Source of the DNA: Sminthopsis crassicaudata
Taxonomy: Eukaryota
Length of the DNA stretch: 64,000 bases
NCBI RefSeq assembly: GCF_048593235.1
Contig: NC_133617.1
Location: forward strand, 488,602,958 to 488,666,957
Direction: 5' to 3'
A program made the translations under genes and the position numbers. Under the pieces are notes generated by a model that saw nothing but the letters and a program-made list of their open reading frames with translations, was not told where the DNA came from and ran no database searches. This document shows positions 30,401-33,400 of the stretch, piece after piece. Every line of letters starts with the position of its first letter. The stretch's first letter is position 1.

Positions 30401-33400
30401 AGTCTTTCAAATCATCTTTTTTTCTGCCTTGGTTAGTGTATATAACTTCTCTCCACCTTTGATTTTGTTTGCTTTCTTCCCTAGCGGAGGATGAAGAGGA
30501 TACAATAGCTGCTGAAGAACAACTGGCAGGGGAGGTAGACCATGCCACGGAGCTCAGTGAATTGGCCCGAGAAGGTGAGAGAACTAGTAACAGGATGTTG
30601 TAGAAGTTGACAAGATTACTTCTGGGAATATAGCACTTTCACAGGTCCACCCCAGTTCTGGGGCAAGGATTTGGTAGCTGGTGCTGAAAGCAAACCCTTC
30701 AGCCCTCCATCTGTGCCCAGTCTAAATCAATGGCTGTAGCATTTGTGGGGCAAAATAGGCTGAGACAACAGGGATGTTGGAGAGGAGATAGCAAGCTGAT
30801 CCCAGTGTGTCCTCTAGGAGAGCTTTCAGTGGAAGAGTTACTGCAACAGTATGCCGGGGCCTATGCTTCAGATGCTTCATTCCCAGGCTCAGGGAGTAGT
30901 GAAGATGAGGAAGATGAAGACGATGGTACCAGCTCTGAATCTGAACAAGATCAGGAAGAGGAAGAGCATCCCCATGAGAATAGTAGCAGTCAGTCCGGTA
31001 TGTGGGGATTGAGGAATCCTGGTTTTGAACTGGGAAAGGACCAGTTGTAATTGGGGATTATGTGTGAGGAGCTCTGATCCCTGTCCCTATCTATGCAGAA
31101 TCAACTGAGGAAGCAATGGAGGAGGAAGAGGAGAATGTTTCAGAGGAAGAAGAGGCAAGCGAGAATTCAGACTCAGAGGAATCAGAGTCAGAAGTGTCTG
31201 AGCAATCTGAGGAGGCCCAGCCTAGAAACCGAGCAGATGAACAGGAGGAGGAGGAAGATGATGACTTTGGAGTAGAATATCTTCTGGCCCAGGATGAAGA
31301 AAGGAGTGAAGTCAAAAGAGACAGTGGCCCTGCTGCCCCAGGGCCTCCTCCATCACTTGGCCCTAAGAAGGAGATAACTGATATTGCTGCTGCTGCTGAG
31401 AGCCTTCAACCCAAGGGCTACACCCTGGCCACCACCCAGGTATCCACTGATCCCATCTTTGTCCTCACTCATCTATGCCTGCCTATGTCTTCTATTTCTC
31501 TTAGCCACAACTTACATTTATTTCAACTCAAAATGTTTGCTCTAGCCATTTTCCAAAGTTATCCCTTCTCTCTTTTCCTTCTGTATCAGGTGAAGACGCC
31601 AATCCCTCTTCTGCTTCGGGGCCAATTACGTGAATACCAACATATTGGGCTGGACTGGCTAGTTACTATGTATGAGAAGAAGCTCAATGGCATCCTTGCT
31701 GATGAGATGGGTCTGGGGAAGACTATCCAGACTATCTCCCTGCTGGCTCACCTGGCCTGTGAAAAGGGTAACCCTAGAAAAGACTCTACATCTGGGGATT
31801 TTGTTTTCCTTCAGGCCCCATACAACTTCCTTGAGAGCAGTTCTTAAGTCATTGGGTGGGAGTCCCAGGTAGGGTTAGGAAATGAAAAATTTGAACGTGG
31901 ATGATAACTATTCAGACTATTTAATCAGAAACTTGGTTATCCATCTGACTGAGAAATGAAAATCACAATACTACTGGGATTGATAATCTGGTGCTTGAAA
32001 GCAAGACTAGTTGCTGTGTGACTGATATCTGGAAAGGAGGATAGAAACTGGGAAATTGTGTTATCTAGCAGGACTTTGGACAAAAAGGCAACAGGCTTGA
32101 TGGAGGGTTTCATTGGGGAAGCCTGGAATGGACTTTTAAACTTCATTGCCTCATCTCTGATCTTCTCCCCTTATTGTCAAATAGGTAACTGGGGTCCTCA
32201 TTTGATCATTGTCCCCACCAGTGTGATGTTGAACTGGGAAATGGAACTAAAGCGATGGTGCCCCAGCTTTAAAATCCTCACTTACTATGGAGCTCAAAAA
32301 GAAAGGAAGCTCAAGCGGCAGGTTAAGACTTTTGCCACTCTTATTTGATCACCTCTGATCTGTATTGATTCTTTGATTCTGGCTCCCTTGATGGCCTCTT
32401 CTTGCTCTCTTCCTTCTATGGATCTCTTTTTTTTTTTTTTTTTTTTTTTTTCCCCCACCTCTTCTCATGTCAAAAAACTTTTTCTTCTAATCTATCCTTA
32501 ATCTCTAGATGGCCTTTTCTTTATTCCTTTCCTATTGTTTTACCCTCTTATTCTATATTCATCTCTCTCTCTCTCTCCCTCCTTTTTTTTTTTTTTTAAT
32601 TTTTCTTTTTTTCTTTTCTGGTCTCATAGGGCTGGACTAAGCCCAATGCCTTCCACGTTTGTATCACATCTTACAAGCTGGTGCTGCAGGACCACCAGGC
32701 CTTCCGCCGAAAGAACTGGCGATACCTCATCTTAGATGAGGCACAAAATATCAAAAACTTCAAGTCTCAGCGATGGCAGTCTTTACTTAACTTCAACAGG
32801 TGAAGATGGGAAAATATAGGGAAAGTCTCAAGATCTGACAAAAACAGCCTAACCATCTACCTGAATTCTGAGAGAAAGTCCTAGGAAAATAGGTTGAACC
32901 TCCAAGGTCTTAACCATGACCTTTTTGTTCTTTGTTTTGTGTTTTCCTGTAGCCAGCGCCGTCTGCTGTTGACCGGGACACCACTTCAGAATAGCCTTAT
33001 GGAACTGTGGTCCCTGATGCACTTCCTGATGCCCCATGTCTTCCAATCCCACCGAGAATTCAAAGAATGGTTTTCTAATCCCTTGACTGGCATGATTGAA
33101 GGCAGTCAGGAGTACAATGAGGGATTAGTCAAAAGGCTTCACAAGGTAAGAGGAAAGAAGAGTAAATTAAAATATAGTCAGTGTGGAAAGACTACAATGC
33201 TCTGCTCAGTAGAATAGTCAATATTTATTCCATACTGACAAAATTTTTTTTTAAATTTTATTAATTTTATAATTATGCTTTTTTTTTTTTTTTTTTTTTT
33301 TTTTTTTGACCATACTGACAAAAATTAAAGGGTACATCTCTTTTTTTGTGTGTGTTATAAATGGACCAACTTTCTCAGGGACCAAACTTTGTAAGGAGGA

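Follow-up and report, generated by a model that had tools for sequence, protein, structure and literature searches.

The SRCAP gene of the marsupial Sminthopsis crassicaudata contains two small nucleolar RNA (snoRNA) genes of the box H/ACA class, both of which match the SNORA30/SNORA37 family and lie within the 64-kb stretch of DNA analyzed here, referred to throughout as the window. The upstream gene, copy 1 (30089-30216, plus strand), is the orthologue of the eutherian, human-type SNORA30. The subject of this report is the downstream gene, copy 2, whose mature RNA is predicted to occupy 30631-30770 of the plus strand (about 140 nucleotides (nt)). Copy 2 is probably a genuine intron-encoded member of this family that occupies the ancestral site in SRCAP, bears a 28S ribosomal RNA (rRNA) guide redundant with that of copy 1, and ends in a 3' hairpin that does not act as a guide. 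H/ACA RNAs are stable molecules of about 130-140 nt that are bound by dyskerin, NOP10, NHP2 and GAR1. They possess an H box (ANANNA) in the hinge between two hairpins and an ACA box after the second hairpin, 3 nt from the mature 3' end, and their pocket for pseudouridylation is two-sided and lies about 14-16 nt from the H or ACA box.

The family assignment was made with the Rfam model RF00415 (SNORA30/SNORA37), which has 129 positions and a curated gathering score of 90 bits. Copy 2 matches this model at 30630-30764 on the plus strand over model positions 1-129, with a score of 59.0 bits and an expectation value (E) of 4.2e-10 in a 2-kb search and 1.3e-8 in the whole 64-kb window. Copy 1 matches at 30089-30216 on the plus strand with 74.3 bits (E 3e-12 in the whole window), and besides these two there is no RF00415 match with E <0.05 in the full window. 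A prediction made earlier from the sequence alone, hereafter the original prediction, had assigned copy 2 to the SNORA30 family, and the Rfam check yields a full-model match at that place, though below 90 bits. A default Rfam scan at the gathering score reports neither copy. This threshold seems tuned to eutherian sequences, since copy 1 and a turtle gene (64 bits) also fall beneath it whereas a eutherian SNORA30 (contig L001) scores 119 bits. Annotation pipelines that apply it would list zero SNORA30 genes in this marsupial SRCAP.

The minimum-energy fold of 30630-30770 has the hairpin-hinge-hairpin-tail architecture of H/ACA RNAs. The 5' hairpin (30631-30686, plus strand), which contains the pseudouridylation pocket, retains 18 of the 18 base pairs of the family model, as does that of every SNORA30. 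Its lower stem pairs UAGCACU with GGUGCUG and its upper stem includes CCCCA/UGGGG; the strands UUUCACA (30637-30643) and UGGUAGCU (30672-30679) bound an internal loop, and the upper stem lies 13 nt from the H box, a canonical spacing for a guide pocket. The H box, read from the sequence as AAAGCA (30687-30692), fits ANANNA. It is followed by the 3' hairpin (30698-30764; minimum free energy -25.7 kcal/mol) and by ACAACA (30765-30770), all on the plus strand. The ACA box is either the trinucleotide at 30765-30767, directly 3' of the 7-base-pair (bp) lower stem, or the one at 30768-30770; if the second is the box, the mature RNA would end at 30773 and measure 143 nt. When compared to dinucleotide shuffles, the 5' and 3' hairpins have fold z-scores (z) of -2.44 and -2.40, respectively, with 3-4 of 200 shuffles folding as well. 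The fold and sequence recover several elements of the original prediction, namely the retention of both 28S guide strands (TTTCACA and TGGTAGCT), a CCCCAG/CTGGGG pairing in the upper stem, an intact H box and a terminal ACA.

The guide strands of copy 2, UUUCACA and UUGGUAGCU, are identical to those in the SNORA30 of three eutherians. SNORA30 and SNORA37 have been assigned to pseudouridine (Psi) 4673 of 28S rRNA, position 4643 in the old numbering (PMC9941101). Given this identity and the canonical spacing to the H box, 28S Psi4673 is the predicted target of copy 2.

The window comprises the marsupial SRCAP gene, whose coding exons, located by protein comparison, span 21888-49012 and share 80-84% identity with five marsupial SRCAP proteins (Trichosurus, Notamacropus, Gracilinanus, Monodelphis and Dromiciops) and 64-68% with eutherian ones. 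Exons relevant to the two snoRNAs were named A-E and mapped by tblastn both in the window and in the contigs of relatives. On the plus strand, exon B lies at 30306-30396, exon C at 30485-30574, exon D at 30818-30998 and exon E at 31101-31439. Copy 1 resides in intron A-B and copy 2 in intron C-D. Spliced contigs of RNA runs X17 and X4 contain the joints 30395^30483 and 30572^30816 (cut +2), and therefore the host intron of copy 2 is the 243-nt GT..AG interval at 30575-30817, plus strand, as the original prediction had it. Its proposal that the SNORA30 orthologue has a second H/ACA gene two introns downstream of it is likewise supported by the family match, the fold and the exon map.

Relatives of the two genes were found through searches with exon-sized open reading frames (ORFs), and their taxa were inferred from protein similarity alone. 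These searches returned no marsupial fragments; the contigs came from other amniotes. They represent three eutherians, all most like Laurasiatheria (L001-L004; L008-L013; L014), a turtle (L016, 94-98% identity to Pangshura exons), a GC-rich sauropsid (L005) and two squamates (L006/L007 and L015). Matches were also scored with R1, a snoRNA family model built in this analysis. In each of the three eutherians, intron A-B contains a high-scoring SNORA30 (R1 108-127 bits) that, like copy 1, precedes exon B at close range (85-90 nt). In nhmmer searches these genes score 49-55 bits with copy 1 as the query and 40-46 bits with copy 2. The shared intron, the shared distance of about 90 nt to exon B and the closer sequence identify copy 1, and not copy 2, as the orthologue of eutherian SNORA30.

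In intron C-D, each eutherian has an additional, weak match that precedes exon D by 60-90 nt (L001 5791-5926; L008 2293-2425; L014 1323-1451; R1 33-37 bits, E 2e-8 to 2e-7). With nhmmer, copy 2 detects these sequences at E 8e-7 to 4e-6 (22-24 bits) and copy 1 at 15-18 bits. They are remnants of a snoRNA gene: their 5' hairpins retain 11-13 of the 18 pairs, none of the three has an unmutated 3' guide strand UUGGUAGCU, and in each of them ACCACT stands at the position of the copy 2 ACAACA, the ACA having been lost at the homologous place. An H/ACA fold is absent from the remnants, with z of -0.3, +1.0 and -0.4 relative to shuffles. The common ACCACT and the shared changes in the guide strand suggest a single early inactivation. 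That the 5' hairpin of copy 2 is intact while its eutherian counterparts show the decay expected of relaxed selection is the best available evidence that this hairpin stayed under selection. The marsupial lacks the 5' half of intron C-D that the eutherians have (L001 5508-5700, with the equivalent segment in L008 and L014); judged by eye, this segment resembles a MIR-type short interspersed element.

Intact family members are found at the corresponding site in two sauropsids. The turtle gene (L016 141-273; R1 89.6 bits; RF00415 64.3 bits, E 2.6e-12) precedes exon D by about 95 nt, the only exon distance that can be checked on this contig. Sauropsid L005 has a family member in intron C-D (1669-1802; RF00415 49 bits, fold z -3.6) and no family match within the 448 nt that precede exon B, the region corresponding to the copy 1 site. 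Like these two genes, copy 2 sits just upstream of exon D, within an intron shown to be the same for L005, and shares their 5' hairpin as well as the 3' guide strand UUGGUAGCU. Unlike copy 2, both have 3' hairpins with a SNORA40-like pocket (Rfam SNORA40 33-35 bits); its strands are GCAACCC and GUUACAGA, with a SNORA40 E of 9e-5 in a 221-nt search. The turtle and L005 snoRNA may be a dual guide joining two mammalian specificities. In squamates, intron C-D contains weak, shortened matches (L006 998-1105 and L015 2691-2779; 11-12 bits, E 0.03-0.1), of which that in L006 is degenerate (12 bits; GGGAUUUAGCCGCUAGUGCUAAGA vs GGGAUUUGGUAGCUGGUGCUCAGA), and the fully covered intron A-B of L015 has no match. 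The snoRNA may be degenerating, or may have relocated, in squamates.

The site of copy 2 therefore matches that of the turtle and sauropsid genes and of the eutherian remnants. The position upstream of exon D is common to the turtle, L005, probably the squamates, the marsupial and, in fossil form, the eutherians, whereas among the contigs compared the position upstream of exon B is occupied in therians only. By parsimony, copy 2 would occupy the ancestral amniote site and copy 1 would be the likelier daughter, so that the human-type SNORA30 looks like a cis-duplicate derived from the gene at the ancestral copy-2 site. Copy 2 would then be an old gene retained in the marsupial and not a recent duplicate. 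This reverses the polarity of the original prediction, since the turtle and L005 have an intact member, and the three eutherians a decayed one, at the copy-2 site.

Copy 2 departs from its relatives in the 3' hairpin. In the minimum-energy fold, a lower 7-bp stem of UUCAGCC (30698-30704) and GGCUGAG (30758-30764) is stacked on CUCCAU/GUGGGG, and the hairpin is completed by an apical stem-loop and a 7-nt bulge on one side only (CAAAAUA). Searched alone, the 3' half of copy 2 has no RF00415 match at E up to 10, whereas that of copy 1 has RF00415 as its top match (18.8 bits); copy 2 thus lacks a 3' hairpin of the family type, and the earlier statement that its 3' half is unlike that of copy 1 holds. 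When the window is searched with an nhmmer profile built from the 3' hairpins of the three eutherian SNORA30 genes, copy 1 is recovered (E 0.0024) and copy 2 is not. Pairwise alignments of 3' hairpins, assessed with 1000-2000 dinucleotide shuffles, give z of 5-10 for copy 1 against eutherian SNORA30 and 12-14 for the sauropsid type (turtle against L005). The copy 2 3' hairpin reaches z <=2.7, which is not significant, against any relative in either local or semi-global alignments. Positive controls worked in each of these homology tests (the pairwise alignments, the nhmmer profiles and the Rfam search with the 3' half). There are, then, three mutually unrecognizable versions of the 3' hairpin: the sauropsid type, the therian SNORA30 type and that of copy 2.

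One rival reading makes copy 2 a true chimera, its 3' half having been replaced through recombination or insertion by an unrelated sequence that happened to supply a stem and an ACA. In its favor, the copy 2 3' hairpin has no significant similarity to the SNORA30-type, sauropsid-type or eutherian-remnant 3' halves, and the other 3' hairpins have stayed recognizable over the marsupial-eutherian and the turtle-L005 comparisons. Against replacement, neither a donor sequence nor a repeat or junction signature was found, the nhmmer alignments to two eutherian remnants continue through the 3' half (adding <=2 bits), and there are weak positional matches (ATCTGTGCCC vs ATCTTTGCCC, p ~0.025 before correction). 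Because the 3' hairpin has no detectable relative in the sequences compared, replacement and remodeling by drift in place are indistinguishable, and we do not retain the label "chimeric" from the original prediction. A chimeric origin is possible but unlikely, and as it concerns origin alone, it is compatible with the functional explanation favored here.

Two specific homologies for the 3' half were considered and rejected. A 3' half common to copy 2 and the eutherian remnants is suggested by an nhmmer alignment that runs through this region, but that extension adds <=2 bits and a profile of the remnants misses copy 2. The second was an alignment by eye in which the turtle lower stem and ACA (CUCUCCA...UGGAGAGACA) correspond to the middle stem and GCA of copy 2 (CCCUCCA...UGUGGGGCA), which would require copy 2 to have given up an old ACA and acquired another together with a new outer stem; in shuffle tests z was -0.7 to +0.65, which lends this reading no support.

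Copy 2 is apparently transcribed. In run X17, SRCAP is represented by a 9.5-kb spliced contig at a depth of 154, and a 1151-base stretch has just two further contigs, one per snoRNA: 30063-30221 over copy 1 (159 nt, depth 5.5) and 30593-30787 over copy 2 (195 nt, depth 9.2), the latter covering the whole predicted RNA. Neither the 87-nt intron nor the remaining part of the long upstream intron has coverage. This pattern looks like that of stable intronic snoRNAs in a long-RNA library. Run X4 contains an unspliced contig (30546-30845) over the whole 243-nt intron at a depth of 15.7, compared to 58.7-103 for the spliced forms, which suggests some retention of the snoRNA-bearing intron.

If copy 2 were a young pseudogene that no longer enters a stable small nucleolar ribonucleoprotein (snoRNP), the RNA signal would represent unspliced or excised intron. 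Consistent with this are the unspliced contigs in X4 and X8, an X17 contig that extends 37 and 15 nt past the predicted ends, a 3' hairpin with no family resemblance, and the clearly dead eutherian counterparts. Every one of those counterparts, however, has lost several of the features that copy 2 keeps, that is, the 18 of 18 pairs, the guide strands, the H box, the 7-bp stem and the adjoining ACA, and in X17 the depth over copy 2 is no less than that over copy 1, an undoubted SNORA30 orthologue. We regard a pseudogene as quite improbable.

The original prediction also proposed that a pocket in the 3' hairpin (CTCCATCTG/AAATA) could direct a new pseudouridylation target. In the minimum-energy fold the 5' side of this would-be pocket is paired (CUCCAU/GUGGGG) and a two-sided pocket is absent. 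An open-pocket model (CUCCAUCUG/AAAUA, with an upper stem of UGCCC/GGGCA) lies 6.8 kcal/mol above the minimum-energy fold, and its 5' strand, CUCCAUCUG, is unpaired in 24% of the ensemble. As for the two stems originally described, TTCAGCC/GGCTGAG is present in the minimum-energy fold, whereas TGCCC/GGGCA is complementary but falls outside it. Copy 2 might nevertheless be a neofunctionalized paralogue, in which the 5' hairpin keeps the 28S site and the 3' hairpin opens to guide a marsupial-specific pseudouridine. The UGCCC/GGGCA stems would place the pocket 12 nt from the ACA, near the usual spacing, and a 3' hairpin unlike that of every relative found is expected after a change of function. 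A survey in chicken indicates that intragenic duplicates may gain guide functions through substitutions and indels (PMC2653536). Against this stand the energetic cost of opening the pocket, the low frequency at which its 5' strand is unpaired and a 3' strand of only 5 nt. For the first two of these reasons a new guide function is possible but not favored, and we consider neofunctionalization very doubtful; a structural second hairpin is the simpler reading of the model folds. Least probable of all is that copy 2 is the surviving ancestral SRCAP snoRNA whose SNORA40-like 3' hairpin was rebuilt to guide a marsupial-specific pseudouridine after the daughter gene took over the 28S site, a history that, if true, would constitute a dated, stepwise guide turnover with a dead intermediate visible in eutherian introns.

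In the explanation that we prefer, copy 2 would be freed from the 243-nt SRCAP intron after splicing and assembled into an snoRNP. Its 5' hairpin would guide dyskerin to 28S Psi4673, redundantly with copy 1, while the 3' hairpin and ACA would serve only as the second protein-binding module required for stability, with no guide role. A duplicate would have arisen two introns upstream in the mammalian line and become SNORA30 proper. The old copy would then have decayed in the eutherians sampled and been retained in this marsupial with a remodeled 3' hairpin.

Several observations weigh against this explanation or narrow it. By score, copy 2 does not qualify for RF00415, as its 59.0 bits are below the threshold of 90. 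The comparison set consists of three eutherians, a turtle, a sauropsid and two squamates, with this species alone on the marsupial side; the eutherians belong to one superorder, and the loss of the old copy covers these three only. The RNA evidence consists of assembled contigs that carry neither strand nor ends and in which gaps in coverage prove nothing. Furthermore, the copy 2 contig, at 195 nt, takes up most of the 243-nt intron, and runs X4 and X8 also contain unspliced intron. The order of duplication rests on parsimony over a comparison set that lacks a monotreme, and only in L005 is an intact copy seen together with a copy-1 site that is empty: the turtle contig stops short of the copy-1 site, and squamate L015, which has no match there, has only a weak match in intron C-D. 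Finally, the proposal of 28S Psi4673 as the likely target of copy 2 draws on guide-strand identity.

Downstream of copy 2, the window contains a 243-amino-acid ORF at 31116-31847. The exon ending at 31439 and the first ATPase exon are separated by an intron that is in frame and has no stop codon, which accounts for this ORF. The middle third of the ORF is intron-coded and is not expected in the protein.

With copy 2, marsupial genomes gain a further H/ACA gene that is apparently unannotated; neither it nor its neighbor is caught at default Rfam thresholds. The SRCAP locus provides a clean, datable case of paralogue turnover, with the ancestral copy kept in the marsupial, fossil in eutherians and intact in reptiles, and the contrast between a frozen 5' guide and three versions of the 3' hairpin offers a natural experiment for learning where in an H/ACA RNA selection acts. 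The general understanding of snoRNA action is unchanged by it: copy 2 is a real, probably functional addition to a known family and not a new kind of element.

The human members of RF00415 are SNORA30 in SRCAP, SNORA37 in MBD2, SNORA30B in FOCAD and one in PGS1 (PMC8178906 supplement). This table agrees with the earlier statement that human SRCAP has one SNORA30, and the decayed remnants in the eutherian intron C-D fit this single member. Like human and eutherian SNORA30 (ACA30), copy 2 has SRCAP as its host gene, belongs to the H/ACA class and has the same 5' hairpin. It differs from eutherian SNORA30 in lying two introns downstream and in having a 3' hairpin that shows no detectable relationship to it and is about 10 nt longer. 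Like human SNORA37 (ACA37), SNORA30B and ACA30c, it is an extra member that duplicates the 28S guide. Such redundancy has precedent in the family, as Psi4673 is the assigned site of SNORA30 and of SNORA37 alike (PMC9941101). SNORA37, SNORA30B and ACA30c are L1-type retrogenes in other host genes (PMC1802619; PMC8178906) and keep the SNORA30-type 3' hairpin, unlike copy 2, an in-gene paralogue at an old site. SNORA30B is ruled out as the human equivalent of copy 2, since it resides in FOCAD and is a retrocopy of SNORA37. Intragenic duplication to nearby introns, in which the guide regions and fold are kept and the remainder diverges, is well documented in chicken and platypus (PMC2653536), as the original prediction had noted for neighboring introns. 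The two SRCAP paralogues resemble these cis-duplicates in sitting in nearby introns of one host. Unlike them, at SRCAP it is the ancestral site that has the copy with the unusual hairpin, and eutherians, the sister lineage, kept the daughter only.

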